From Hormiphora californensis (lineage: Eukaryota; Animalia; Ctenophora): a stretch of DNA of 64,000 bases. A model generated the notes under the pieces. That model was not told the origin of the DNA and did no database searches. It saw nothing but the letters and a program-made list of their open reading frames with translations. The position numbers and the translations under genes were made by a program. Numbering within the stretch: the first letter of the stretch is position 1; every line of letters begins with the position of its first letter. The DNA lies in the NCBI GenBank assembly GCA_020137815.1, contig CM035362.1, forward strand, positions 4,712,001-4,776,000, read 5' to 3'. Shown in pieces: positions 1-20,500 of the stretch.

Positions 1-267
1 ATGATACTTTTTATTTCAGTCAGATTTGCTAAGTGTTTTCTTAAGTTTTACAATCTGGTTCACCAATTTATATGTGAATTGCAAGTTACATAAATTGCTC
101 ATTTTTATTAATCTCCCAAAGTTAACTAATCCCTTATTAATTTCAATTCTCTTCGCTAAATTTACTAATCACTAATTAATTACAAATTTTTTTTATATTT
201 ACTAATCACTAACCACTAATTAATTTCCTATAGCAAGTTTCAAGTTTCCAATCCCATCAACACCATC

Positions 268-1000
268 ATGCCTATGAAGAGAGTTGTCTGTGTGTTCCTT
301 CTCATCGCCACAGTTATGCATTTCTCAAACGCCAAAAGGTGAATAGTTATCTATTTAATTGTTTAATCAATTATTCAATTAACCAATATTTTGCAATCAG
401 TTAATTATATAACTAATTATTCTCTATCCAAACACATACCTAATATCACGTACCTTTCCAGTGTGTTGACAGCAGAAGATGATATGGTAGTTGAGAGGTC
501 TGCAGAGGAAATGATCAACACAGCAGAAGACAACATGCACCTGGAAGAAGAGGAATTGATAGGTAATTAAATAATCAGATAATTAGTTAATAATTAAATA
601 ATTAGATTAAACAGCTGGTGCAGCTGCATGCATGGATGGTCAGCAAAATTAAAATTTTAATTTCAAACCCAGACACACCCACACCAGCAGTCTCTAACCA
701 AAGCCCCTTAACTAACCCATGTCTATTTTTAACCAGTTAGAAGGGTTAGGACCGCATCCGAGCTGCATCTCGTTTCTGCCAACTAGTGTTTTTATTTTTA
801 ACCATTTTCTCTCTAGGTTCCCATGGTAACCCGACTATTTCTCTCTAGGTTCCCATGGTAACCCTTCTATTTCTCTCTCTAGGTTCCCATGGTAACCCGA
901 CTATTTCTCTCTAGGTTCCCATGGTAACCCTTCTATTTCTCTCCTAGGTTCTGATATCAAGATGAGCCCAAACGAAAACATGTGGGCCGGACGAAAGTAA
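268..1000 (+). CDS. Secreted amidated peptide (neuropeptide-like) precursor, 3 exons (268-338, 462-562, 948-1000), 74 aa
   Basis: Phase-consistent GT-AG splicing gives MPMKRVVCVFLLIATVMHFSNA-KSVLTAEDDMVVERSAEEMINTAEDNMHLEEEELIGSDIKMSPNENMWAGRK*: hydrophobic signal peptide, acidic spacer, C-terminal Gly-Arg-Lys amidation/cleavage signal directly before the stop. Confidence 0.85.
805..947 (+). repeat. Tandem ~32-bp repeat (4 units) duplicating the 3' splice acceptor of peptide-gene exon 3
   Basis: (ttctctctag gttcccatggtaaccc gact/ttct at) x4, followed by ctcctag|gttctg, the acceptor that keeps the frame. Confidence 0.9.
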
Positions 1001-1190
1001 AGACTCCACTCCTGTTACTTTTAGTATTAGCCCCCCTCCTTCTGATCATCTCCTCCAGTTGAATACTTACTCAACAAAGTATAACCGATATCAAGAGCTC
1101 GATTAGTTCCCCACACACTCTCTCAGTAAAATGCGACTATCATAATATGAGCAAAAACATGTATCTGATCTCTTTCTCTTTGATCATAGT

Positions 1191-1298
1191 CAGAAACCGA
1201 CCGAATCAGGAAATACTGGTCCCTGATTGGCTGATAACCAGTCACGTGACCTAAATAACGAATCTGATTGGTTGTTTACTTGTTTCGGTCGGTTCCTG
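1191..1298. mobile_element. ~108-bp hAT-type MITE (family A), copy 1
   Basis: TIRs cag(g/a)aaccgaccgaa...ttcggtcggttcctg; perfect 8-bp TSD atcatagt (1183-1190 / 1299-1306); three copies in window. Confidence 0.9.
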
Positions 1299-2557
1299 AT
1301 CATAGTATAGTTGGTTTCTGAGCTAGTTTTTGATCGGCTGAGCGATCTTCCAGCTGTGTCACACACATTAGAGTTAAAAAAGACATTTTCTTTCTGATAT
1401 ATGAATATATCTAGGGTTCATTTTAGAGGTGCGATGACATCTGGCATCACACATTGAAAGCCAATATATATAGCTGATCTATATAGATTTTCTTTCATCT
1501 GCCCCTAATTCTCTAACTGGCGCCAAAATGTTTTTGTGAAGTTGTGTCACATTTTAAGTTTTTAACCCCTATATACACATGATGAGCGTGTTAACATGGT
1601 TACCATGGTTACCACAGGTTACCATGGTTCCCCACTATAACATATGAACACAGGCCCCAGAACAAAAGGCTTTTTACAGCGTGCAATGATATAGTGTGTG
1701 TGATGTGTGTGCTTTTTTCTGTAAATTGTCCCCCTCTAAGTTATAATGGTGTTAGAATTGTGATTTTTTGCCTATATATATTACTCAATTAGTAACTCTC
1801 TTTTTTGAACAACTATTACACGTGTTTGCCAACGTGCAATATATGTATGTTAGTATATTTGAATATATATTTGATCTTGTATAATGTTATTCATCACGTG
1901 ATCTGATCTGTGTGAGTTAATACCATCTGTCTGGGACAGTTTGGCCCGCACATGATAAGAGATACTATATGGCCCATGATATCTAGTTTTCCTAATATAA
2001 CAAGAGTATATTCTAGTTGCAATAGTGCGTATAGCTTCCATCAGACACTCATCCATGCGGTGTTTTATTCAGAACTATGGCACGAGAATTGAACGGTGGA
2101 ATAGTAGCGGTTAAATGCAAATAATTCTATACCATTTCTCTCTCTCGTCCCCCTCTTCTCTAAAGGATAAAATACTACCCTGCGATGATTCGGAGAGGGA
2201 TGATCAGAGACAATGATATGAGTGGTATTGCACTTTCATCTCACAAATATAATACCTGTGGTACTACAATAATATCTCTGTGCATTTATCAGTGGTACTA
2301 CAATAATATCTCTCTGTTCATTTATCAGTGGATTGGATTCCGTAGAAGAAGACCACTATTATATATCTGTGTTTTGAGTGACAAAAAGTTCTGAATTTAT
2401 GTCCGCGCTCTAAGCTTCTAGTTTAATACTATGCCACATTCTTTATTCTCTATATATATATAATTGACACAGTATTATTGGTCCCAAGATATTGTTTCTT
2501 GTTCACTTGTTTTATCATTCTTTCTTTTACAACGGCAAATATGTGACTTTTTTTCGT

Positions 2558-2666
2558 CAGGAACCGACCGAATCAGGAAATACTGGTCCCTGATTGGCTG
2601 ATAACCAGTCACGTGACCTAAATAACGAGTTCTGATTGGTTGTTTACTTGTTTCGGTCGGTTCCTG
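2558..2666. mobile_element. hAT-type MITE family A, copy 2
   Basis: Same TIRs and internal sequence as 1191-1298; 8-bp TSD with 1 mismatch (tttttcgt/gttttcgt). Confidence 0.9.
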
Positions 2667-3038
2667 GTTTTCGTTTAATATAATTGACACTGTCAATGAC
2701 AGAAAATAAACTGCTGCCATGCCTGCTGAGCAGCCACACGGTGAAAAAACAGGTAAGGTCTGTGAGTGTGACGTTGTTGCATGATGTCACATGTAAATTA
2801 CAAGGCAGATAAGTTTAGTTGCGTGTGACGTTTTCGTTTAACGATGATCAGAAAATAATCTGCTGAACAGCAGCTTCCTAGCCATGGCTTGCGTGCACGC
2901 GGTGAATAGGAAATCAGGTACCCGGTGATATGTGACGTATAAGTAAAATTAAAAAGCAGTTTAGCTGCATGTGACGTGTAATACCTAGCTGTATACTAGT
3001 GACTGACGGACTGATCGAAGGTAGCGCCCAATCTTTAA

Positions 3039-3920
3039 CCCTTTGGAGACGATTGGGTCACAGGTGACCCAGTACTTTGAACCCATTTAGCGTCTTTATA
3101 GATCATGTTTGAAAGTTTTAAGTTGTTTCCAGGGTTGAAACATACATTTTTCTACCATTTTGAGGTCGTTTTGAGCCTCTGAAGTTGTCGACTTCGGAAA
3201 ACAGGTCTAAAACAGTGCATTTGGTAGGCAAAATGGGTAGTTTAATGGCCATATCTCAAAATTGGTACGAGTATGCTTAAAATGGACTTGGAAAATGCAA
3301 GAAAAGTGTGTATTTTACCCCGGGGTAAAGTTTCAGGGTGATATTACAAATTTTGTGCCTCTCAGAGGCCTTCAAAGTGCTGGGTCACCTGTGACCCAAT
3401 CGTCCCCTAACGCTAAAACAGAAATTTGCATTTTACGAGCATTTCTAAAGGAAAGGCTGTCGATAAATGTCTAAAACGGCATTTTTTAAACAGGTGCTAG
3501 CGACTAACCGACTCCATTATTGTTATCTCAACATCATAGGGAGTCCATGAAAAATTTTTTGAGATCCGTGCTCCTTCATAAAATTTTTCATCTCGGCCAA
3601 TTTTGAAATTCTAAAATCGGCTACAGATGAGATAGAGAGGTCCATAGGGTGTGCAAAATGTGCAGAATGGCCGGGTTTATATGAGTGTTATGAAGAAACA
3701 TAGGGCCTAAAATGAGCGGTTTTCGAGTTATGGGGCAAAATAGCTGCGAAATCTCAATTCCTGTTTTAGCGTTAGGGGACGATTGGGTCACAGGTGACCC
3801 AATAGAAATACAGGTGGTAGAACCAAAATTCCTTTTCCTGCGTTCAAGTAGGTTCAAAGTAATTGTCTCCAGGAAGTTTTAGAGAATTCTGTCGATAGGG
3901 GGCTTATCGTCCCCAAAGGG
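3039..3920. mobile_element. Non-autonomous piggyBac-type element (882 bp)
   Basis: TTAA on both sides; TIR ccctttggagacgat / atcgtccccaaaggg; internal repeat gacgattgggtcacaggtgaccca at ~3048, ~3381 (inverted) and ~3778; no transposase ORF. Confidence 0.9.
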
Positions 3921-5974
3921 TTAATAGAGGCATATATAGAGGTAGGCGGGTTGTTCAGAAAACCGACTTATAATATAGGCCGGTATGTGACTTATCGATA
4001 AAAAAGTTACTTCAGTTGGATTCATCGCAAAGAGCACTTCCAGTAAAAGTCTTTACATCATTTATATTGGCCATATACCTAGCTATCAAATTGACAGTAT
4101 GGGACCCGCAGTGTGAATGGCACACACCAAGATCAGTCACATGATATTTAGTTAGTGCAGTGGAATATAGCACGATTCGTACATTGCACGTGTTGTTATG
4201 TTCTAACCCTCCCTTTACATTTGTAAAGGTAGGTGTTTCGAGTGCGGGGCGCCCGAAACACAGTCTAGCCAGGCAATGCACGTGGATCGCATGCGGTATA
4301 TGCCTCCTTAATGACAATGCAAGATTTTGTGATAATATCCTATTCGGATTTCGGATTTGTATTGTCTTATTCTTTTGTAACTCAACAGCTATTCTTCGAT
4401 TTGGGAACGATGGGATTCAACAAAATCCCAGCTCCATGCACTTGCCTTGCTAAAAAGGATTTGAAACAAAACAAACCCACACCAAATGTGAGGGACTTGT
4501 AGAATATGAGAACTTGAAGTTAGACTTGGACTTGTCTTCTAATTTTCAACTATGTATATGTACTATACCTCATACCCTTGTTAAATCAATTGTTGGTCCA
4601 TTCGGCAGTCAAGACGAGTCGAGGTGTCCCCTAAACAATTATTATGTATGCCTTCGACATTCGAGTTTATTATATACGAAACATAATACTGCCCTATTAT
4701 ATATATACTGCGCTGTATCCGGGATCATATACCCATGTTTACCAACAATTCGCCCAATGCAAGCTTTCTCACGTTTCCCAACCTATATAAAAACACGACC
4801 TCGCGATACAATAAGCCTTGTACCGTTCATCGAATATTCCAATGCAACAACAATGGAAACGCTGCTACGCCCAATGATGCTGCTCCTTTATCAAACTATT
4901 TATGCGAATAAAAGCTAGCTCTTTTAACAACCAACAAAGGGGCTTTGTTCGTTTACGTTTCCGCATATCCACTCAGGACCGACGGTGCAACGTCAACTAT
5001 AAAGAGCCGCCCCGCCCCCTCCCACCCACCAGTGCCTTTCCAAACAATAAATGAGTTGTCTAATACCCAACAATAAATGAGCCTTTATGAACAATGAATT
5101 GTCTCCTTGGTTTCTGCTTTGTGCCAGGTCTTTGCTTGTCCCATGGGCGTTTTGAAGTCGTTTATAGATCGTCGTGACGTGTGGAATGGGGCGGTGTGAC
5201 ATGTCTATTGGCAGAGCTATTGAGACAGAAGCTATGAATCTAGGTTTCTACAGTATGCTGCGCTATATTATCTTTGCATTCTTGCGAATTTTGAATATTT
5301 CAATCCTCAGAAACCAGGATGACAAAGGACTAATTTTAAAGCTCTCTATCAATCTATTTTCCTGATAGACAAAGCCATTTAAATTGCAGATCCTATAATT
5401 CACCCTTTGTTATTTTGACCACAGCAAAAATTAGTCAGCCATGGCTTCACAGTTCAACAATCTGAACAATAAGATTTGGTGGTGACCGCGGTTTCTATTT
5501 AATCACTGTTATTATAGTGCCGAGAACCAACCAATCGCGTTGCATGAGTGAATTTCTCTTTTTCTTCTTGTCCAGCTATATCTCATCAAATTCATATCGA
5601 CGTATCACTCTCAGTTCTCTCGTTGCACAACTACTTTTGACAACAACATTTCTATTCCTTTAACACCTATACAACCAGTATAATATTATTAATAGTTTGC
5701 ATAGGTGCTACAACATCTTAGTTAATTATTTAGTGCACTAACTGACACACTGAAGTGACGGTACAGATCTAGACACCTACTTCTTAAATTAATGACGTGG
5801 CGTAATTAGCATCTACTTTAACCCCTTTCCACGTCCTCCCCCTCTCTATCCAGGGTCCAGCTGGTCCCAGCTCCCTCTCCCAATTTACGACATATAGAGC
5901 TCCTATAGGTTAATTGTGGAATATTGTCCCTAGTCTACCAAACTATCCCTCCTAGGTTGTAAAGTTCTCCATCT

Positions 5975-5986
5975 TCTATCTCTATC

Positions 5987-6065
<79 letters not shown>
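5975..6065. repeat. (CT)n microsatellite
   Basis: Direct inspection. Confidence 0.95.
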
Positions 6066-6068
<3 letters not shown>

Positions 6069-6705
6069 CCTTCTTTCAACCCATCTTAATTAGATCCCGT
6101 CCTCTCAAAGGTCATGGATGATAATTGACTGCCTAATTATCTAGTGCTGCAGGGAGCATGTTCCCCCTTTAAAAACACCGTACAGTTCAGTGCAGTTCCA
6201 TACAACAGAGGACAAACTATCCTCTGAGCTCTTGTTGGGGTAGTTGCATTATTCCTCTGAGAGCTGCCTTTGTCCCCCTTTATCTTGGGAGGGAAACTTT
6301 GCCCATTCATGTCGGCCCCCCTAAAAGTTCTCTATACAATGCCCTCTGCAGAATAAATAGAATAAACCACTGTGCTCTGATAGGAGACCCTGGCCAATTA
6401 GATCCAGTTTAAAAACCTACAAAAGGACTGCTATTCAAGAGTCATTTCACTTTTTTGCTATACTAGTTGCAGCCTTGCCGACGTTTCAGTTGTTCGTCCA
6501 AGTCCCTCCACTTGCCTTTCTCTGATAAGGTTTTAAAAACATCGCAACCCTCTTCTAACTTGCCTTGCTCGACCCTGTTCCACCGTGCCCCGGGTTAGAA
6601 CTAATTAAATATATCAGCTAATACATAATTAGGAATAAGAAGGCCAAGTGGTAAAAGACAGCTGTTCGCGGATTTCAACACTTCTCTCAAGATGACCTGT
6701 CCGCC

Positions 6706-9700
6706 ATGACAAGCTCTAGCCTGCTCCTCTTAGCCCTCACGGTAAGTGACACACATATATAATGCCAGGGATTTCCCAAACTCTCTCACAGTTAGTCACA
6801 AGAGGAAAGAACAATCAGAAATCATTCCTGAAAGATTTTCAAACTATTTGCCAAAGAGTCCTTCGCTGTCCAAGAAAAGGACCTGTTTATTCATGATCTA
6901 AATTGGCATTACAATATGCTACAGGCCCCTCTGTATGCAGCGATCAGTGCGATATTCATCGCTCTTCATTGAAGAGTCTTCTTCAATGATCTGAGTGAAC
7001 ACGTGCTGACAATTAAATGTTCCACTAGGTTTCGTCTCTATAATAACACGTGCTCACAATATTCCACTAGGTATCGTCCGTGATGTCTGGTGACATACAG
7101 GGATCAGTTAACTGGGTAAATGAGAACATGTCCCCTGTTGATGATCAGTGGAGCTGTGGATCCTGTTATGGCTTTGCCATGGTGAGTTTTTCTGTTTGTC
7201 ACTAAACCACGGCTTTGCCATGGTGAGTAAAATAAAACTAGAATCCTGTTACGGCTTTGCCTACAAGTCATGAGACTCGCATATTTACCGAACGTTTGAT
7301 GGTCTGGGGGTTAGGGTTTTTGGTCTTTCCAGTTCCAATTTCTCAACCGTCTCTATAATGGTCAACCTTCCCTAAATAAAGAACTAATAGAAACTAACAC
7401 ATCTATCTATCTCCCTCTAAGTCGGCTCTCATAGAGTGGAAGGCATCAAATGTAACGGGTAAACTCAACAAACTATCCAGGCAGTTCATCGTGGACTGTA
7501 TGGGATATGATGGGTGTGCTGGAGGCACTTCTTCTGACGGTAATAATTGCAATCACACACTTTACTACTTTTTACTACTTTGCGATGTTTTGTAGATTCC
7601 TTTCTCTATTGGACCCCTTTTAGAATCTCTCCTTTTTTGGACATCTTTTAGAATCCTTTCTCTTTTGGAAATCTTATAGAATCTCTCCTCTTTTGGACAC
7701 CTTTTTAGATTCCTTTACAACACTTTAGCCAATACAAGATCCCTTTTCCACAACACATCTCTCTCAATTCACAACACATCTCCCTCTCATTTACAGGGTT
7801 CAAGTATCTGATGGCAAACCAATACCAACCCTACGCTGCTGACTACGAATACCTCGGATTTTGTAAGTGGCATGTTGATGAATTCTACACTGTGTAACTG
7901 TGTTTAAACACACAAAACATGTTTCAAATTCTAATAATAAGATCATTAATTGGTTTCTTCAATTAATTATGATTTTTGTTATTATCACCTATTTACAGAT
8001 GATGCGGATCACTGCGCTGAATACGGAGCTGAAGATAAGTCGCTGAGGAATGCTCTATCAGACGTTTGGATCTTGAACTACGATCGAGTTTCTAACATGG
8101 ACTGTAAGTCGACTAAACAAGCCCATATATGTGTGACCTAGGTACCACTCGCTCTACTAAAAGTTTAATGGTTCATCATGGGGGTTGGGGCATGTTCTTT
8201 TTTTGGAGGCATTGGGCACGCATGATTACCACCAATAATAATAACAGATATATCTCAAACTGAGCAATGACCCCCACCTGATCTCTAGGGAGTTCTATAC
8301 ATGGTTACTACCTATATAACATAACACATATTAACACATATATCTCGCTAGGGAGTGGAACAGAAGAAGCGCTGATGCAAGAAGGTCCCGTGGTTGTCAC
8401 TGGCTACATCTCTAAAACATTTATGAGTTATTACGCGCCTACCGGTATGTGGATTCGATAAACTTAACTAATCCTTCATAAAACTTACCATTGCACTAAA
8501 CTACTCCTTAATAATTAAAACTAAAAATTACAGTCAATACACTTAAATCCATTTTAGGATACAATTTATAGCTTCAAGCTTTCTTGATGCAGATCTTCTT
8601 ATTGAAATAACAACATCCAACAGATGGTACGGATCCGTACACAGATGACACATGCACAACAGATCCCAACAGTCACGTGATGCTACTGACGGGATACAAC
8701 TACAATAACGGTAATTGAAATAAAGAACATTACTCCTTGAGAAAACATTCCACTCTGATCAAACTGCTCCTTCATAAAACTAAACATCACACACATTCTG
8801 CAGGTGATCCATACATTACAATAAGGAACAGTTACAGCGAGTATTGGGGAGATGAAGGGTACATCAACTATGCTACGAACGATGCAAACTTCGATTGCAG
8901 ATTCGCTAACAACGCCTACACTGTTCACCTTGCCAAGAGAAAAGGTGAAAAATCAAAACTACTAATAACGTTAAACGTTGCCTGACACTGCATGTGTGAA
9001 CAATTCAAGTTGACATTTCGGGAACTAACATTTCAAACATTTCTACAGAACTTGAGTACAAGATTGGAACTGGAAGATTGAACTACTACGATGCCCAGGC
9101 TTACTGTCAAGGTTTTGATGAAACAACTGGACGAACAGGTATTGATATCCCCATAGCCGGCCCAGAAGACACATTTTGAGTTTGAAATATAAAACAAACA
9201 CTTATTCAAAGTTGACCCTTTTTAACCCTTTTTAATCCTTTTTAACCCTTTTTTAACCAGGATGGGATTTGGCCATTGTTCCCACGCGAATGCACAACAT
9301 GGAGGTATTTGATATGTTTACAGATAAGTATGGTACTGACAAGAAAGGAAACGATCTCTTCAACTATTTCTGGATCGGAATTGAGTAAGTTTTATGAAGG
9401 AGCACCATGGTGATCACCGAGTTTTAACAAGAATCATAAACTGATCAGTATATTCGAATCGGAGTAATGCATAGCTTGCTTCGAGAGATTGATTAACCCC
9501 GTATTTCACTATTCAGTACCGCCAAGTCCAGTTTTACCTGGGTTGATGGATCCGATATAATCTTTGATAATTGGGACTACGCCCAAAAATTCAACTACAA
9601 GTTCGCCGCCATGTACAAGTTCAACACTGATTATGAGATTGAGGAGGCTCGGGGCAAGTGGACTACACTGGCGAAATCGAAGGAGTTGAGGTTTATGTGC

Positions 9701-12700
9701 AGTCGATACCGATACGGTGAGTGCAGTTACCATGACAACAACCATTACAGTGTTACCATGACAACAAAAAGCAGTTTAATTTTGATTTAGAGGTTCATTT
9801 GTTGTAGAATATAGAACTTTGGCTGTTCCAACTCAACTATAACCGGAACTTTTGTGTCAACCTATCATGAAGCTTCAAGTATAAAACTTCCTTCTTTTTC
9901 TGCAGAGACGTGCGAGAGGATATCCCAGACTCAGATTGATAACGCCTTCAGCTTTACCATGTACAACTCATCCAATGAGGAAACCTTGGAAATCGAGGAG
10001 GGAACTGTCGGGGTCTTCACCTGTATGGATGGGTAGGTGCAAGTAGAAAATAGAAACCTCTCTGTCAGAGAACGAGAACAGTGGTCAGAGCATTTGCCTG
10101 ACATAAACCTAGCTTTTATCTAATCATCAAAGTGCTCAATCTGAAAGCAATTCAGTCATTGTTTGAAACCTCAAATCGAAACCTCAAATTGAAACCTCAA
10201 ATTGAACCCTCAAATATCGAAACCTCAAATAATTAAACTTCAAATGGAAACCTCGAATTGAAATTTCAAATATCGAAATTCGAAACCTAAAATCAAAAAC
10301 CCTCATATATCGAAACCTCAAATCAAAAACCTACTGCAGGTATACTCTCTATGGTGATTCTGTGACATGTACGAACGGACAGTGGAGCGCCATGCCTACT
10401 TGCGCCATCGGTAAGTGACCTTCAAACTTGATTTAATTGGATCAATTATGAATTAGCTAATTATCAATTAATTGGATCATATATATTGCACGAGATATTA
10501 TACTCATGGGGCATGAAGAATCACAAACTCAATTTGAAATAGCTGCTTTATTCTACCAGTGTGTGTCAGCCGATTTTGATTTAGCTTTTGCTGTGGATTT
10601 GAAATCTTGAACCAGAAAAAAAGTTTGCTTTGAATCAAAGAAGTGCCCAATTTGTTTTTGCTGACAGCCTATCAAAATGAAATATCAAAGAGCTTGGCAG
10701 TTTTTAAATAAATTATGAAGTCCTCGCTGCCTGTGCATAAATTTCGCTGCACCCCTCACGGGGTGGCTGGGGACCCTGGAATCTCGGGACATGTGGGACA
10801 CGCAGCACCTGGCACAATATCGATGATTCGAGCTGAGACGCTGCAAGTTTGCCCCCAACTTACAAAACTCCTGTTGTAGCCGCGTAACCGTGGAGACAGA
10901 GGGTACTGCAGTGGAGTATTTGAGAGACACTATGGAGAGAAGGAAGATGAGTCAACTATCTGAATCAGAGGAACAAGGACTGGATTGATCGATAAAAGTT
11001 TTGATATCAGTGAAAAATGACACTCAATTCGGAGGATAGTTTGTTTTATGAAGGAGTATTTTACAGAGCCTTCACGTGTTTTTTGTTCCTTGTTTACCCC
11101 ACATTTTTGGAGGCATCCAATTTCCGCAAGCCAATAAAATCCGTGTTTTATTCGTAGCACACCAACACAAACATATAGCATGCCCCCTTTTCTTATCACA
11201 AAACTTCAAATACCCCTTGGCCTTGTCTAACGTCTAACAAAACACAATCTTACCCCATCTAACACACCATGGCCATCTAACGTCTAACTTCTAACACATG
11301 CAGCTCCACCAACGTGCTACATGATGGACAAGAGTGAGATTGAAAACAGCAAAAAACTAAACTACAACTCTGATGATATCGATGAGAATGGGGAACTAGT
11401 GGATGGTGCCGAGGTCCGAATCGTTTGTGCGAGCACGTAAGTTAACTAAACATCATTTATCTCACTTTCATTTTCCATTTCCCATCAGTCCCCTCAGTCC
11501 CCTAACTTCCTCTCTTAACACCCCCTTCCCCCTCCCCCGTCCAGGTATTGGGTAACCTATTGGGAATCAAGCTACAAGCGAATGATCTGCTCGAATGGAA
11601 ATTGGACCAACATCCCCACCTGTGAACAGGGTAAAGTTGAGGAAGTTTAGGTATCACGTGATGTGCCCATATATGGAAGTTTAGGTATCACGTGATGCCC
11701 ATATATGGAAGTTTAGGAAGAATTGTATCACGTGATATATGTCCATATATGGCATGGTTGTTGAAGGTATCACGCAAATTAATTCCTTTACCGAGTGTCG
11801 TGCTCGATGCCAGAGCAAAAGCACAATTAGTTTTTTTTGAAATGTATTATGTTAGAAATGCAGTGGGAATATTTCGGCTGTTGTGTGTTGATGAAAAGTA
11901 AAGTTTGTTGGTGAAAATTTTTTGGTGGCGCATGGTTGTTCAAAGTATTTTCGGTGAAGTATTTTCGGTGAAGTGGCGCATGGTCACGTGATGCCCATAT
12001 ATGGCATCGTTATTCGTTGTTCAAAGCATTTTTGGTGATGAGTGTGATAGGAGTGGCGAAGAAGGTTTTCGACCAGAGTGATCTATTGCACGGTTTTTTG
12101 TGTGATTCTACGAGATAGATAAGCCCATACTTGCTATAAGAATGCATTTGCTGCCATTTAAGGAGGAGCGGAAGTCCCTTTCTCTCATGTAAATATACTC
12201 TTGCTGCCTGATAGTAAAGCACCTTTTCGAGAAGAGGAGACAAAATAATTGAATTTGTTTTAAACCAAACCGCATCTACGAAAATGAAATAACTGCGTTT
12301 TAAACTTGTAAAGGGGTCTTGGAACTTGTCAGCTTGCTCAAAAGTGTTTTGTGTTCTAAATTTATCGCTAGGATAATGTTTAGTTGCCAATCTACCAACA
12401 AAACAGGACCCGACCGAATCAGGAAATACTGCACTGGTCCCCGATTGGCTCATAACCAGTCACGTGACCTAAATAACGAGTTCTGATTGGTTGTTTACTT
12501 GTGTCGGTCGGTTCCTGCAACAAACCAGAGCAAATTGTATTTCGGATGAAGAGAGTTCGTTGAATTTTCTGACTGTCATGGTCTGAAAACCTTGGTTTTA
12601 TGGCGCTTGCCTTTTCAGTTCATGCGTCAAACGCCCTCGAAGGTGACAAAAGTACAGTAGATACACAATTGTTACTGCCTTGGGGTGGCGTCTGGCCTGT

Positions 12701-13100
12701 CTTTTATTTGAGAATAAAATCGGGCAGACAACGCCTGGATATGTCGCAGAGTAATCTGTACTAAAAAGACAGTTGCTGAAACGCCATAGAAACACATATC
12801 AAAACCACGACGTCTGCAGCTTTATCCGAGTCGCTTTGCTAATTTCATGGGTTGTCTTATTATTCTTCTTAGATACTTAGAATCAGTATGACCTGAATCA
12901 ATTAGTTGACCAATCGGCTGTTTTAAACTTTCCCTAACTGTTTGTAGTTAGATCTAGGTGCCCTCTGTCTGGCGCTGCGAACCCATCTGAGAATCTAATC
13001 GGGGTCTGACGCCGCCAAAAAGGATGTGATGGCCTTCTTGATGTGCCATGAATTCTGGCATCTATGCCTGTGGAAAATAACCTCAAATCTGTCAGAACCT

Positions 13101-13164
<64 letters not shown>

Positions 13165-13166
13165 TA

Positions 13167-13237
<71 letters not shown>

Positions 13238-13809
13238 CATCTCTCTCTCTCTCTCTCTCTACTCCTCTCTCTCATCTCTCTCTCTCTCTCTCTCTCTCCT
13301 CTCTCCTCTCTTCTCTCTCTCTCTCTCTCAATCCTTTCCCCTCACTCGCAGCCTGTTCGAAGTTCTCATTGTCGTCAATCCCGAACGCCAGACGGGTAGC
13401 TTATTCCAACGAAGATATCGATACAAATGGAAGGGTTGTTATCGGAGCTCAGGCCAAGGTTTACTGTAGCACAACGTAAGTAAAAATCCCTGTCACGTGA
13501 TCCCAAACAGCTGCAGTACAAACAAATAAAAAGACGCCCCGAATTAGAAGATCTCAGGAGATATACCGAGTGTACGAAATCCCTTGACAGATCTCCTGAT
13601 GTCAGCGTCTGATGGCCACAGTGGGGGGTCCGATCCAAACTTTTTATTGAAGGGCATGTGGATCATGATATGCCCGAAAAAAATTAAATTTTCTCTCCAC
13701 ACATTCCAGGTATTACGTGACGTATGACGATGATGCTACCGTGAAAGCGATAATTTGTGGACCTGGAGGAACCTGGCTGAACATCCCAACATGTGAACAA
13801 AGACTCTAA
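6706..13809 (+). CDS. Secreted papain-family (C1A) cysteine protease fused to a C-type lectin domain and three Sushi/CCP domains, 17 exons, ~603 aa
   Basis: Exons 6706-6741, 7071-7181, 7422-7539, 7797-7862, 7999-8103, 8352-8444, 8624-8710, 8804-8944, 9049-9138, 9261-9384, 9517-9716, 9906-10032, 10340-10410, 11304-11436, 11545-11630, 13352-13475, 13710-13809; all phases join (1812 nt). Motifs: signal MTSSSLLLLALTVSSVMSG; DQWSCGSCYGF (Cys 7164-7166), LSRQFIVDC, GCAGG, GPVVV, NSHVMLLTGY (His 8674-8676), RNSYSEYWGDEGY (Asn 8827-8829); CTLD DAQAYC..FWIGI..FTWVDGS..NW..FMC; three CCP repeats ending CTNGQWSAMPTC, CSNGNWTNIPTC, CGPGGTWLNIPTC. Confidence 0.92.
10166..10332. repeat. Intronic degenerate tandem repeat (gaaacctcaaat)n
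   Basis: About a dozen imperfect 12-14-bp units ending at the exon-13 acceptor. Confidence 0.85.
11642..11752. repeat. Short interspersed/tandem repeat tcacgtgatgcccatatatgg (also ~11983, 14710-14792, ~22165)
   Basis: Same ~21-bp CACGTG-containing motif recurs singly or in tandem in several introns. Confidence 0.8.
12404..12517. mobile_element. hAT-type MITE family A, copy 3 (intron 15 of protease gene)
   Basis: Same TIRs; 8-bp TSD caacaaaa/caacaaac. Confidence 0.88.
13104..13329. repeat. (CT)n microsatellite upstream of exon 16 acceptor
   Basis: Direct inspection; source of spurious SL/ER ORFs. Confidence 0.95.
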
Positions 13810-14420
13810 AGGGTGTTATTTTTTTGAAGGATCGTGTTTTGATTTTTGATTTTGAGAGTTGCAATGTCCATGATGATGATGCCCTATTTGAGGGCTGTCA
13901 TAAAACGTGCATGTTTTTGATACCACGCATTCACGAAATAATATATCTTTTGTTTGGTTGCAGTTTTAAAACATTTTATCTCATGCTCACACAATTGGCA
14001 GCGGATATTTTTGGGTAGATCCTGTCAGGCTCATCACCAACACACTAATACATTTCACACCAAAAATGTCACACAAAAGCAAAATGTCACACTCAGTCTC
14101 ATGTCATGATTGTCAAACTCATGTTACAAGCAGGTCACACACTCAAATTCTTATCCTTTTATCCTATAGATCGTATTCCTATTATGGCGGCGAATCTGTG
14201 AAAAGATAAGATTGATTCAAGAACCAATTCTATGATAAAATTCTAAGTTACTAACCCAACATATCTATATAAATAAAAAGAATACTACGAGTAAACCCCC
14301 TCTCCCAGCTCCCCTTCTGTAATATCAGAATCCCCCTCCTTCTATCTTCATCATTCACAGCTTCAGTAAATACCATCCAAACTAGGTACCACAAGCAGCT
14401 ATTTCCCAGGGTACAACAAC

Positions 14421-14540: not shown

Positions 14541-17500
14541 TTAGTTTTTGTAGTAGTTGATGGTGGTAGCCCGGGATTTGAGTCGCTGTGCAAAATGATG
14601 GTTATCTCCAGAGTGCTCCAGGACCTTGAATTGTAAACCTGTGGGGGGGGGGGTTGTTGTTGTTCAACTCTGTTACTATAGTCATTCAGCAATACACGCT
14701 GCGACGTTCTCGTGATGTCCATATATGGCGTGTCACGTGATGCACATATAAATGGTGTGTCACGTGATGCCCATATATGGTGTGTCACGTGATATACCTA
14801 TGAAGTGACGGGAAGGAAGATAGTTTCCCTCGATAGAAGCAGTCCTAGTGTCCATCCTGCAACTATACCTCTCATTTCCCATCGGCCAAGTCTGTAGGAA
14901 AGGGAATTTGGTTGTTAAAATTATTCAGGACATGAAGAGAGCATTATTGCTATGCTGCAGTACAAAGTTTGGTTAAATCAGCCCACTACTTTACTTTTTG
15001 CATCACTGCTATTAATCTCGATATCTCGTTTTCCTATCTCCCTCCCTCCACTAATAAAACAATACCCACCCCACGAAAAAACTACCGTCGTACTCACCAG
15101 TAAAACTACCATTGAACCTTCACTCTGACTCACCAGGTCGGTAGTGGTAAGGACTCCGTCTTTTCCTGCTCCTTCATCAACAACTTCAAAGCAGGTCAAG
15201 GCCTCTCCAAGTTTTAGGGACCTGGCTGGGGAGCTTTCAGGGACGGAACATACTGCCAACTTGAACCTGAAAGGGAGTTATTTAGATTCCATGTCTGAAA
15301 TGGTTGAAATTTCCTAGTTAGAATTAGAGTTTTACTGAACCAAACATATATGTCATACCCAACTCCACCCAAATTAACCCAAATATACACAAATACTTCA
15401 ACACATCACACCTGCACATGAGGATGTTTTTAACGAAGCTAAGGGTAGAAGACCCAGATATAGCCATCCCATCTATAAATATCGCCTCAATGTCCGTAGT
15501 GGGAGAGCCGGGAAAGTTGGTCTTGTAAAAATCATACACCTGACTTCCTGAAATGGGGGGTTAGGAGAGGTCATGGGGGTAGTAGACACGGCTAGGGGTA
15601 TGTTCTGTTAAATGGGTCACATGAAGTAACAGCGACCAGTGTTATACTCAGCTCTTCTTCAATTCTCTCGGAAACGGAGAAGGGTAAGGTGTAGAAAATT
15701 CCATAACACGGTAAAGCTGGAATCTAGTTTACACCAGTGACCAATATATCACTTCAGATAGAATTGAAAAGTTCACCCATGTAATGGTTGATGACGCGTG
15801 TATGTAGGGTGTAAAGTGTATGTCATGAGCTGTGTGTCATGAGATTGAGTGTATTGTTCTGTGGGACACACTGTCGCAGTTGTTACCGCCTACCGGACGT
15901 AACGCGCGAACTGATCATTAGTATGTGACACTTTTGTGCACGCACTTGAAATGCACCTTTCAAGTGCGCGCACGTGCTTTTTGTGAAGATGAACGAGTTT
16001 TAAGCTGACAAGCACTTTGTCAGATTCCCAATATCGAACTACCTTAACGTTGTACTACCTGATCCGTCTATTTTGTTAACCACCCGTTATCTACCGTGTT
16101 TCCATTCGTCCACCTTCCCAAAATCATATTGACAGTGGTAGCAGTGAAGCTGACGACATTATGCCATCCGACATTCATGCCCCGGTCTTTGATAACAAAA
16201 CGAACTTTGAGACTTATCGCCGTGAGGTCGACATCTGGCTGTTAGGTACTGGCTGCCCCAAGGAGAAACAGGCGGCCCGGTTAGCTCTCCAAATGAAGGG
16301 AAGAGCTAAGGAAGTAGCCCTAGGCGTACCCACCGAGCAGCTCAAGTCTGAGAACGGTGTTAAAATCCTCCTCGATGCCATCGAGAAAGTGTTCGGCAGA
16401 GACAAAACTGTTTCACTCTTTTCCGCCATTGAAGCTTTTGAGAACTTTATCAGACCAGCTAATCAGAACATGTCAGATTTTATATCAGAGTTTTCCACCT
16501 CTATGGATCACAAGTGTTAGCCTACAGACTTTTGGAACAATCTAACATCTCCGATGAACAGAAACGACTCCTCAGAACAACCTGTGTTGAAATCAGTCTG
16601 GAATGCATGATCACACAGATGAAGAGGGCGTATGGGGAGACCCTACCCTCAGCTGCTGAAACCGATCAAACCTCTGAAACATTGACTCTAGTTGTCTGTT
16701 ACAATTGTAAGAAGACTGGTCACATTGCCTCTGAGTGTTACAATCGGCGTGGTGCCGTACGGGGAAAACGTGGTGGAGGACGTGGTCAGCGTGGATCTGG
16801 CGGTCGACGAGGTCAGAGTGGCGATGCCACAGGAGTGTACAAGATGAGCGTTGAAACGGACTATGTCTTGTCATTATCTGAGCAAGTGGGACTTCGTGCG
16901 TTGCTGGATACTGGCGCCGCTAAGAGTGTGTGTGGCAGTGATTGGTTGAAGAATTTTGAGAAAGAGTCGTGTATTCGAGTGAGAAGAGAATCATGTGAAC
17001 AGAGAAGATTTACATTTGGTGATTTATCAGGAGTTAACTCTACTATGATTGCTTATATCCCAACTGATATTTTTGGTGTGAAGTTTACTGAGTTTGCGGT
17101 ATATGTTCTTGATATTAACATTCCCCTTCTCCTATCCAGGCACTTATTGAGTCAGATGGGTGCAGTGATTGACTTTGAGAGGGATCAACTCCGTGTCTCG
17201 GGTAAGACAACTACATTACATCTTACTGACACTGGACATGTGACAATTGACCTTAATAAGAAGCTTTCACCCACTACTTTGTTAACAAATTCTTGTTCAG
17301 GGATCTCTCCTCCAGCAATTGCCAAGAAACTCCACAAATACTTTGCTCATGGTTCAGTCTCCAAGATCCAGGATATTGTTAAATCCTCGGATCACCCTCG
17401 AAAGTCTGAGATTTGTCAAGAACTCACCAGGGTCACACAAGAATGTGAAAACTGTCTCGAACACAGTGCATCCAAACCACGGAGGAAAGTAGCTCTACCT

Positions 17501-20500
17501 CTCAGTAAAACATTCAACGAATGTCTCGCTATGGATCTCAAGATGCTGAAGTTCAAGTCTGGAGAATCATGCTGGGTACTTCACATCATTGACACACTGA
17601 CCAGATACAGTGTAATGGTCCCCGTGAAATCAAAAACTGGAACTGAGATCACCCAGAAGTTCTTCACCAGCTGGATTAGCATTTTTGGACGTCCACAGAG
17701 AATTCTCAGCGACAACGGTGGCGAGTTCATCAATGATACCCTACTTGAGATGGCGAGCAGACTTGGAATCGAATTAAAGTCTACTCCAGCAGAAAGTCCT
17801 TGGTGCAATGGGATCTGTGAGAGACATAACAGTATTCTTGGAAAGATGGTTGAGAAGACCAAAGATGACACGAAGTGCAGTATAACTGTAGCTTGTGCTT
17901 GGGCTTCCAATGCGAAGAACCAGTTGACTAACCAGATGGGATTCTCACCACACCAACTCGTGTTTGGGAGCAATCCTACCTTCCCCAGTGTACTGAACGA
18001 TGATTGTTTACCTGCCCATGGAGACCAGAAGAGTGAGGACCAAGTGATTTCAGACAATATCAAAGCCATGAAGACCGCCAGGGAGAAATTCATCCAGCTC
18101 GAGAATGCAAGCAGATTAAAGAGAGCTCTAGCAAGTTCGGGACCAACACAGGATCAGACCACCTACGTCCAGGGAGATAAGGTGTATTATAAACGTGAGC
18201 AACACAAGACCTGGTTGGGACCTGCAACTGTAGTTGGAATGACTGAGAACCAAGTACTGATTAAACACGGCGGACAACTACTAAGAGCACACCCATGCAA
18301 AGTGAGACTGGTACAACAAAGACAAGAACCCCCAGAGGACCAACAACGGAAAGAGGAGTACAAACGAAACGAGGAATCAAGTTCCAAGAGACACGTCCCC
18401 GAGATGCAGACTGCACCGGAAGTGACGACTGATGAAGATGTCCCGGAACCGATAGAGAAATCTAAATTGCAGCCACCGAAGGCTAGCAGAGTCAGACGTC
18501 CAAAGAAGACAGTCCGTGAACCGACCAGAAAATACAATCTTCGGCACAACCGACGACAAACCCCCCCACCAGAGCATCCTGCAGATGAATTACTCATCCC
18601 TAGTGAAACAGATCCCGAAGAGGACACTCCACAAGATGGACACAGTGAGAGTAACATTGAAGAAGTTCCCAGAGAACCTACTTATGCAGAGATAGCCGTC
18701 CCAACCGAGGACCAGCAGGAGGATGAGGCCACAACAAGTGGACCTGTTGTTGTGAGAGTTCCTGAAAGTGAAACCAGCCCGGATACTGAGGATACACCTG
18801 GTCAGAGAGACATAGAGCCAGATCCCACAGAGGACAGCGCCAGACACAATGAGGAAAAGACTGACTCCAATGAGGACACGTCAGCGCCAAAAGAGGATGT
18901 TGCAGAGCCCGCAGAGGCTGCAGCAAAGACCCCAGATCAAGACACAGAGGACTCAGATCCTGATTCTGATGCTGAGGAGATCATTCTTCTTGCCGCATCT
19001 AAACTGGGCAAGGAAGAAGTGCAGACAGCACGAAATAGGGAGATTGACAAACTCCGTGAATTCAATGTTTTCGAGGAAGTACCCGATACAGGACAACAAC
19101 CAGTCACCACCAGATGGGTGATGACTCGGAAAGATGATGGCACAGTGAAAGCCAGGCTGGTGGCCCGAGGATTTGAGGAAAAACTCGAGGACCCAACTAA
19201 CTCACCGACTGTTACTAAACACGCAGTGAGGATCTTGCTAAGTTTGGCAACTACCAGTAACTGGACCCTGAAAAGTGTTGATGTAACCAGTGCCTACCTG
19301 CAGTCAGATAAGATGACAAGAGATGTGTTCATCAAACCCCCAACTTACCTCAAGAGGAAGGATGTACTGTGGAAACTAAATAAACCACTGTACGGTCTTG
19401 GTGACGCGGGAAGAAGATGGTACATGTCACTCACCGCAACTTTGAAAAACACTCTCCAGATGTCAAGAATTGACAAGAATGTATTTTTCACCACTGGAGA
19501 TGACGGGAAACTACAAGGATTACTAGTAATTCATGTGGATGATATTCTTATTACTGGTGATCACAACTTCTACAAGAAAGTTAAACCCGCTCTTGACAAC
19601 TACAAGATAGGAAGAGTTGAAACAACTGAATTCAACTACCTGGGATGGCAGTTGAAACAGCAAGGAATTGATATTTGTGTAACCCAGGAACAGTATTGTA
19701 AGTTTGTCAGAGAGGATATCCTGGACAAGATGAAAGCTGTTAAACCGGTACCACAGAATCAAGAAGAGGTTGATGAGAATCTTCAATCCTATATGAGAAC
19801 GGTGATCGGAAAGTTGAATTGGCTGGCTACCCAAAGTATGCCACAGATCAGTTTCAGTCTCCTTGACATTACGACGAAATCACCCTGGACCGGCAAAGAG
19901 TTCAAAGAACTGAAGAAGATTGTGACCAACCTTTCTCCATCAACGATAACCTTTTCCCCTTTTAACCCTACCTCAGCTGAGATAATTGTTTACACTGATG
20001 CCAGTCTCGGCAACCTTGCTGACAGAAAGAGCGGAGCAGGAGTTGTAGTTTTCTGGGGAGACAGCTCTGATTTCAATTTGATCGCCTACTCGTGTGGCAA
20101 GGTAAAACGTGTAGTGAAGAGCGTCTTTGCCGCAGAATTGTATGCTGTATCTGAAGGATTGGGATATGGAGTGATGATTAAAGCCCTCCTCCAGGAACTA
20201 TCTTTTGACCCTCCCATCAGACTTTTCACAGACTCCGCACAAGTTGTGAGTTTGGCAAACTCCGTCTCAGCCGTACCAACTGATAAGGGAAGCATCTTGG
20301 AGCTACGTGAAGTTCAAGAGAAGGTCGAAAAGGGAGAAGCATCCATCAACTGGGTGGAGTCGAAGTCTAACCCCGCTGATGTACTCACAAAGCGAGGAGT
20401 GAGTCCCAGAGTGATCGAGAGGATGATCTAGTGTGTTTTTCAACCTACTTGTATTTTTTTTAAACTTTATTTCTCCCGTTTAAATATTTTATCGGACAAC

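Follow-up and report, generated by a model that had tools for sequence, protein, structure and literature searches.

The window analysed here is a stretch of 64,000 nucleotides (nt) of the ctenophore Hormiphora californensis (GenBank assembly GCA_020137815.1, contig CM035362.1, positions 4,712,001 to 4,776,000 of the forward strand). It carries on its plus strand a gene of 17 exons (6706-13809) encoding a signal peptide, a papain-like (C1A) cysteine peptidase domain, a C-type-lectin-like domain (CTLD) and CCP (Sushi) modules. Protease, CTLD and the first CCP (CCP1) are co-transcribed, a short isoform ends after CCP1, and the gene belongs to a family whose named members are all ctenophores. The product is probably a secreted mosaic cysteine peptidase, made from one gene with alternative last exons and serving targeted extracellular proteolysis of a digestive or defensive kind.

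Gene structure and transcripts

The exon boundaries were read from the sequence and checked by script, and they match the span of a first-pass annotation made from the letters alone, which had proposed 17 phase-consistent exons. All 16 introns run from GT to AG with consistent phases, and the coding parts total 1812 nt, or 603 codons and a TAA (13807-13809). The queries taken from the window were single exons, and whole-protein and structure tests were carried out with database orthologs and relatives (P0001, P0002 and others). P0001 is a gene model of Pleurobrachia bachei that is collinear with exons 7-16. P0002, an ortholog of 459 amino acids (aa), was found in three assemblies on transcript-sized contigs of 1.5-1.7 kb (Logan, JGI) and is laid out as signal peptide, mature C1 domain, CTLD and CCP1. 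Exon 1 (6706-6741) holds the start codon and codes for signal peptide residues 1-12. It is required since the frame of exon 2 is closed immediately upstream, and the N-terminus of P0002 is laid out alike.

Transcript evidence was obtained from run X1, an oligo-dT aquatic metatranscriptome whose contigs, 90-99% alike, were mapped to 7950-13949. Five joints were seen directly (8103>8352, 9138>9261, 9716>9906, 10032>10340 and 10410>10880), and loose contig ends fell on the ends of exons 4 and 8, the latter before 9047, and on the start of exon 11. In total, eight joints of the model or its alternative ending are supported by X1, namely 4>5, 5>6, 8>9, 9>10, 10>11, 11>12, 12>13 and the joint from exon 13 to 10880. 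As joints 8>9 to 12>13 are found in RNA, protease, CTLD and CCP1 lie on one transcript.

The short isoform is seen in a 460-nt X1 contig in which 10410, the end of exon 13, is joined to 10880 across a GT..AG intron and not to exon 14. The alternative terminal exon 13b (10880 to approximately 11138) continues in frame with Ala-Ala and a TAA at 10885-10887, followed by the 3′ untranslated region (UTR) and an AATAAA at 11133-11138, and the resulting C1A-CTLD-CCP1 protein has 458 aa. P0002 likewise ends in …PTCAIAA and a stop, and because the ortholog has the same ending the one-CCP form is conserved and not a truncation.

A peptidase domain without propeptide

The peptidase domain is spread over exons 2 to 8. 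Exon 2 (7071-7181) holds the end of the signal peptide, the mature N-terminus and the oxyanion Gln and catalytic Cys (QWSCGSCYGF), and it is followed by exon 3 (7422-7539; a PF00112 match, with 97.5% identity to P0002), exon 4 (7797-7862; its last 30 nt are the loose RNA end before 7999), exon 5 (7999-8103; RNA joint 8103>8352, GT..AG) and exon 6 (8352-8444; RNA joint 5>6, collinear with P0002). The catalytic His lies in exon 7 (8624-8710; NSHVMLLTGY), as supported by P0002 and by the cathepsin L alignment described below. Exon 8 (8804-8944) codes for the C-terminus of the domain with Asn175 (IRNSYSEYWGDEGY) and ends in a dibasic KRK, and its joint to exon 9 is found in RNA.

PF00112 (Peptidase_C1) matched in collinear order on exon 2 (profile positions 4-30, 19.4 bits), exon 3 (40-71, 18.6 bits) and exon 8 (182-218, 23.7 bits), the last of these alone exceeding the curated cut-off of 20.7 bits, and P0002 scored 117.6 bits (E 1.1e-33). 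When the exons were aligned one by one with a canonical cathepsin L that the same genome encodes without introns (C2:4622668-4623297), Gln19 and Cys25 (DDQWSCGSCYGF), His159 (NSHVMLLTGY) and Asn175 (IRNSYSEYWGDEGY) all fell on their counterparts. A profile of the family retrieved cathepsins K, L, S and V from the PDB at about 1e-41 and about 28% identity. The AlphaFold model of P0002 (pLDDT 85.9, pTM 0.85) has an ordered junction between protease and CTLD, and its predicted protease domain superposes on cathepsins K and S with a target TM of 0.83-0.86 and a root-mean-square deviation (rmsd) of 2.5-3.0 Å. The C1A domain with intact Gln, Cys, His and Asn, as given in the first-pass annotation, is borne out by PF00112 and by the same-genome cathepsin L, and the signal peptide is present as well.

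The signal peptide has about 18 residues and ends between MTSSSLLLLALTVSSVMS and GD, with small residues at -3 and -1, and the mature N-terminus (…SVNWVNENMSPVDDQ…) follows directly. The propeptide of cathepsin L found no counterpart in window positions 1-7100, and the I29 Pfam profile gave no match in any family member scanned. By sequence, catalytic residues and fold the gene is a C1A member, but one that lacks the I29 propeptide.

Cysteine cathepsins are numerous elsewhere in this genome of 110.7 Mb, in which PF00112 has more than 150 matches. Dozens of them are complete intronless open reading frames (ORFs) of cathepsin L type, a large expansion that lies partly in tandem clusters such as those at C11:6.29-6.30 Mb and C6:6.79-6.88 Mb.

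The lectin-like domain

The CTLD is coded by three exons. Exon 9 (9049-9138) supplies its start (ELEY..., helix 1 and the first Cys) and is tied to exon 10 by RNA joint 9138>9261, and the fold of P0001 supports its assignment. Exon 10 (9261-9384) holds the middle of the domain with a motif invariant in the family (GWDLAIVPTRMH...FWIGI), and the loose RNA end behind 9384 corresponds to the start of exon 11. Exon 11 (9517-9716) codes for the C-terminal half (WVDGS..FDNW...GKWTT...RFMCSRYRY). The Pfam scan of exon pieces returned no match for the CTLD exons, the pieces being too short, and the precomputed Pfam lists of the relatives hold PF00112 and PF00084 only. Since the CTLD scores under the Pfam threshold, domain censuses of ctenophore immune repertoires and architecture searches in databases will see only "Peptidase_C1 + Sushi" in these proteins.

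The domain was recognised by direct comparison. The 66 aa of exon 11, searched with phmmer against 1.84e9 representatives, gave 14 matches, five of which were relatives from the family; the remaining ones that were scanned (E 4e-6 to 1e-3) were genuine multi-CTLD proteins, with Lectin_C E values of 1e-38 to 1e-250. Among the PDB sequences matched by exon 11, 17 of 19 were CTLDs, the best being mannose receptor CRD4 (E 0.0024), and aggrecan, CEL-I, CD23, PLA2R and a collectin were also found. The AlphaFold model of P0001 has a pLDDT of 75.5 overall and mostly 80-95 over the CTLD and CCP1-2. Residues 56-197 of this model, compared with 48,161 solved chains, matched about 50 different solved CTLDs with Z of 12-16.8, and the best match was CL-K1 (Z 16.8, rmsd 1.9 Å over 114 residues). 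The CTLD claimed at first pass is accordingly present.

FWIGI is found in the place of the WIGL motif, and the outer Cys pair, made by the Cys of helix 1 and that of FMC, is retained, while the inner Cys pair is missing both here and family-wide. At the EPN/QPD site AQKFNY stands opposite GEPNNY of mannose receptor CRD4, and at the WND site KWTT is found instead; neither of these Ca2+/sugar positions is conserved in the family. The middle domain is a C-type-lectin-like fold and not a demonstrable lectin. Glycan recognition of lectin type, which had been put forward earlier, is unsupported because EPN/QPD and WND are absent and only one core disulfide out of two is left.

CCP modules and the long isoform

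CCP1 is coded by exon 12 (9906-10032) and exon 13 (10340-10410; GY.L.G...C..G.WS..P.C). RNA joints 9716>9906 and 10032>10340 lie on the same 460-nt contig, and the Pfam Sushi match of P0002 covers the same stretch as exon 13. The long isoform continues with CCP2, in exon 14 (11304-11436; collinear with P0001) and exon 15 (11545-11630; supported by P0001 and by an RNA contig at 11550-11684 of depth 2), and with CCP3, in exon 16 (13352-13475; 62% identity to residues 342-383 of P0001, Cys pattern retained) and exon 17 (13710-13809, including the TAA; an RNA contig at 13728-13872 of depth 20 with 0 differences). The exon 15 contig is unspliced at its 3′ side, and the exon 17 contig extends over 63 nt of 3′ UTR.

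The Pfam scan found nothing on the Sushi exons as single pieces, which were again too short. Each of the three modules has four Cys, a Trp and the Gly/Pro landmarks in the pattern C...C..GY/Y...C..G.W...P.C, begins in phase 1 and is split over two exons at the same point. With PF00084 (Sushi) P0010 scored 52.5 bits and P0009 39.2 bits, and P0002 matched at E 1.7e-3; the family profile retrieved several CCPs of complement factor H (1.3e-66) and also the factor XIII B chain. The CCPs of the gene are ordinary CCP modules. CCP3 shares 14 of 43 and 16 of 32 residues with CCP2, the latter count making exon 17 paralogous to exon 15, and to go by these identities it is an old duplicate of CCP2.

The reading frames, splice sites and Cys/Trp pattern of the long-isoform exons are conserved between species, as seen in P0001, although joint 16>17 is covered by no homolog. 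An in-frame ATG is lacking in exons 14 and 16, as is a start codon in the CTLD exons, and exon 14 cannot be a first exon since its frame lacks an upstream ATG. Based on P0001, on coding conservation and on the RNA contigs over exons 15 and 17, a three-CCP isoform of 603 aa is likely made in addition to the short one. The three Sushi repeats named in the first-pass annotation are coded in one gene, but the transcript seen in RNA ends after CCP1 and the threefold form is the less supported.

A ctenophore family

A profile search with the first relatives yielded 22 clusters at E <= 1e-40, so that the family has at least this number. It is defined here by a signal peptide followed by a mature C1A domain, the junction K/R-R-x-E-[LI]-E-Y, the CTLD motifs and at least one CCP, and exons 8-13 of the window carry all of the family-defining motifs from the junction onwards. 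Named members are KAL5246840.1 and KAL5246846.1 of Mnemiopsis leidyi (both "hypothetical protein") and, through cluster membership, XP_063693195.1 of Bolinopsis microptera ("uncharacterized protein"). The best database match of exon 11 is the Pleurobrachia bachei ortholog sb/3465621 in EukProt, with 97% identity there. At least four ctenophore genera are represented, that of the window included, and many members stand on transcript-sized contigs of 1.5-2.2 kb. The C1A-CTLD-CCP architecture was held to be undescribed, and no description of it was found in a search of the full-text literature; in the public databases its members stand without a name or a described function. A one-off convergent assembly, also proposed, does not agree with a family of at least 22 clusters with paralogs in the same genome. 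A search of the ESM Atlas gave no usable match.

In the alignment of the 22 clusters, full-length members pass directly from the signal peptide to the mature domain and none has an I29 domain; a short acidic or His-rich insert occurs in three members. The catalytic Gln is conserved in 18 of 19 sequences, Cys in 18 of 19, His in 20 of 20 and Asn in 14 of 21. The junction and the CTLD motifs GW.LA.IPT.MH and RF[MV]CSR vary little or not at all. Relatives have either a single CCP or two, and a Lys-rich tail is frequent at the end of the forms with two. At the junction itself (8936-8944/9049-9060) the dibasic KRK of the window corresponds to K/R-R-K/R/H in all 22 relatives, always just ahead of the invariant E-[LI]-E-Y. 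This motif may be a cleavage site of proprotein-convertase type or simply structural, the P0002 model having a tight ordered turn in which the final strand of the protease passes directly into the opening strand of the CTLD.

The gene is single-copy in its genome, and three further members of the family were found at C2 (about 6.667-6.671 Mb) and C1 (about 7.553-7.560 and 7.567-7.569 Mb). The paralog at C1:7552943-7560382 (minus strand; loci L004 and L007) keeps Gln, Cys and His in its C1A domain, with Gly in place of Asn175, and carries the CTLD motif GWDLAVIPTLYHN. Behind this come at least 16 CCP-like repeats in tandem (…TCSTGFTLSGNKDVTCTNGVLSTLPTC), nearly identical to one another and with Leu where a CCP has Trp, which give the product the look of a protease set on a long stalk of CCPs. 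The other two (L005, C2:6663000-6672999, about 4000-7600, plus strand; L006, C1:7565000-7573000, about 2530-4155, minus strand) are likewise multi-exon genes with a C1A domain and a family-type CTLD, and the C2 copy has a CCP too.

Two intronless ORFs on C12 (L001, 1381-3129, minus strand) and C3 (L002, 1937-3799, plus strand), considered as single-exon copies, were rejected, as their family is a different one whose C-terminal domain is not that of the present gene. Their products of 582 and 620 aa have a signal peptide and share a C-terminal domain of about 300 residues to which no family was assigned. Their papain-like domain is very divergent (PF00112 47-50 bits over the full length, Cys motif GCPSCS), and they form a separate papain-derived family.

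Repeats and neighbouring elements

Several features lie in the introns. Intron 2 contains at 7195-7262 a partial copy of the end of exon 2, with a stretch coding for SCYGFA and a GTGAGT donor, which lies outside the frame of the model and is the remnant of a small local duplication. Intron 12 holds at 10165-10335 a minisatellite of about 12 bp with gaaacctcaaat-like units. In intron 15 a (CT)n microsatellite of about 240 bp (13095-13339) stands directly before exon 16 and was left out of the RNA mapping. The same intron carries at 12396-12517 a dispersed repeat of about 120 bp with inverted ends, of which there are at least 930 candidate copies genome-wide at 87-94% identity. An RNA depth spike of 2122 on this stretch is due to the repeat, and a small RNA, suspected there at first, was rejected, as no Rfam match was obtained and the element is dispersed in that many candidate copies.

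Downstream of the gene, at 16161-20431 on the plus strand, an ORF of 119 aa is followed by one of 1305 aa in what is apparently an intact retrotransposon of the long terminal repeat (LTR) type, whose domains follow the Ty1/copia order (zinc knuckle, protease, integrase, reverse transcriptase, RNase H).

Discussion

Papain-like proteases belong to the best-studied enzymes, and for the secreted and lysosomal ones an N-terminal prodomain, needed for folding and latency, and a single catalytic domain are regarded as near-universal. The ctenophore C1A-CTLD-CCP family breaks both rules, as the prodomain is missing and the catalytic domain is joined to a fixed C-terminal CTLD and to CCPs that vary in number. 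In the reading preferred here, the product would be an active extracellular cysteine endopeptidase, to judge from its sequence, and the CTLD and CCP modules would bind proteins or surfaces and so hold the protease on its substrate or matrix. The choice between one and three CCPs may change reach or valency. The most likely setting would be extracellular digestion of prey at acid pH, in pharynx or gut, or else surface defence. The pharyngeal juice of ctenophores has an acid pH of 5-6.3, and in Pleurobrachia a cathepsin-like activity has been reported whose enzymes were not identified (PMC6733828). Extracellular digestion is the first guess, ahead of defence or adhesion, because of this acidic juice, the reported activity and the more than 150 PF00112 matches of the genome, and the family offers named candidates for the cathepsin-like activity of the digestive juice (PMC6733828).

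Several observations weigh against this reading. The RNA of run X1 came from an environmental sample and not from the sequenced animal, and the species-labelled run X2 had no contig on 7950-13949. None of the long-isoform joints 13>14, 14>15, 15>16 and 16>17 was seen in X1, and P0001 was the only other protein found with CCP2-CCP3, in a search whose length filter makes a blank say little. Lectin_C scored 20.6 bits in P0002 (E 7.6e-4), under the curated PF00059 cut-off of 22.6 bits. Both Trp26 and Trp177 of cathepsin L are Tyr in the gene, and C1A activity is not to be assumed because the prodomain is normally required for folding. The modelled structures are those of orthologs, with 86-97% identity in exon 11, and not of the joined protein of the window.

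A prodomain is ordinarily needed by C1A enzymes for both folding and latency. The rigidly attached CTLD is an obvious candidate for this role, and cleavage at the conserved dibasic junction is another candidate for the control of folding or latency. An extended proposal, in which the C-terminal CTLD took over the job of the missing prodomain as folding scaffold, as means of latency or as both, and in which the choice of last exon sets anchoring, is held to be unlikely on present evidence. If true, these would be the first C1A endopeptidases maturing without a propeptide, and the CCP number, one against three here and at least 16 in a paralog, would set the anchoring of the active enzyme. The scope of the finding is molecular evolution and enzymology, and no major picture is changed unless prodomain replacement holds.

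It is rather improbable that only the short C1A-CTLD-CCP1 product is made and that exons 14-17 are duplicates in decay or parts of another transcript. The sole joint of exon 13 in RNA leads to 10880, the orthologous transcripts of P0002 and its cluster end likewise, and many family members stop after one CCP. Exons 14 and 16 showed no X1 cover, which together with the long-isoform joints missing from X1 and the lack of a second database protein with CCP2-CCP3 would agree with such an account. Against it, exons 14-17 have kept open frames, phases, GT..AG sites and all Cys and Trp of two CCPs, the region is conserved in the Pleurobrachia model P0001, and these exons have neither an in-frame ATG nor a signal peptide of their own. 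Exon 17 with 63 nt of 3′ UTR is present in poly(A)-selected RNA at gene-like depth and exon 15 is covered too, while other members have two CCPs on single transcript contigs; gaps in contig cover are not probative.

A protease domain serving as a non-catalytic or barely catalytic scaffold, in a protein for binding or adhesion comparable to the cathepsin-like proteins of TINAG type, is given a low probability. The missing prodomain and the two Trp to Tyr replacements would fit a scaffold, as would the loss of Asn175 in seven of 21 relatives and of both Gln and Cys in P0033. The gene of the window nevertheless has Gln, Cys, His and Asn, and the conservation of Cys in 18 of 19 and of His in 20 of 20 members indicates selection for catalysis. 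In addition, the protease domain of the ortholog is predicted with confidence and superposes on the active cathepsins K and S.

No more credence is given to a pattern-recognition effector protease, that is a cysteine counterpart of the lectin-complement and Factor C cascades in which the CTLD recognises microbial glycans. The set of protease, CTLD and CCP does recall Factor C and MASP, and fold searches place the CTLD-CCP part beside selectin and CD93. CTLD and CCP genes have also been treated as immune candidates in ctenophores (PMC11797021). Set against this are the absence of EPN/QPD, WND and the second disulfide from the CTLD, the position of the modules C-terminal to the protease, and the lack of a zymogen activation site, a prodomain and any known downstream substrate.

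Two separate genes, one for a protease and one for a CTLD-CCP protein, merged in reading the DNA, can be dismissed: the per-exon Pfam matches, confined to the protease part, would in principle allow this, but joints 8>9 and 11>12 are found in RNA, transcript contigs of ortholog and paralog type have all domains in one ORF, the junction motif is invariant over 22 clusters and the CTLD exons lack a start codon, so that the single gene proposed at first pass stands.

Comparison with known systems

With cathepsins L, K, S and V (MEROPS C1, C1A) the protein shares the papain fold, Gln19, Cys25, His159 and Asn175 and the signal peptide, and it differs from them in lacking I29, in its C-terminal CTLD and CCPs and in having Tyr for Trp26 and Trp177. 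The gene is multi-exon, whereas many canonical cathepsin L genes of the same genome are intronless. A papain-like domain followed by a Cys-rich C-terminal module is known from plant RD21-type proteases, with a granulin domain, and from the trypanosomatid cruzipain type. These retain the N-terminal prodomain, however, and have C-terminal extensions related to neither CTLD nor CCP.

The succession of a CTLD and CCP/Sushi modules is shared with the group-14 CTLD proteins CD93 and thrombomodulin and with selectins. Over both domains the P0001 model matched CD93 with Z of 13.5-13.6 (177-189 residues) and the lectin domain and SCRs of E-selectin with Z of 13.9. CD93 and the selectins are membrane receptors without a protease, while the protein of the window has no transmembrane segment; selectins moreover have an EGF module between CTLD and CCP and a working Ca2+/sugar site, the motifs of which are absent here.

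Factor C, MASP, C1r and C1s are secreted proteases with CCP modules, and Factor C also has a CTLD. The likeness lies in a catalytic domain aimed by binding modules, and to this extent the analogue suggested in the first-pass annotation holds. The present protein, in contrast, is a cysteine protease of C1A and not a serine protease of S1, its modules are C-terminal and not N-terminal to the protease, it has no zymogen activation peptide or pro-region, and it has no known cascade partners. The likeness is a design analogy only and not a homology of the entire protein, because catalytic class, module order and zymogen activation differ.

In a census of Mnemiopsis CTLD architectures no peptidase C1 partner is found among those listed (PMC11797021), which fits, since the CTLD of this family is under the Pfam threshold. 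The closest systems are the ctenophore relatives KAL5246840.1, KAL5246846.1, XP_063693195.1 and sb/3465621, which belong to the same family, lack a propeptide and have the same junction and CTLD motifs. They have one or two CCPs and often a Lys-rich tail, whereas the long isoform of the window has three CCPs and no basic tail.

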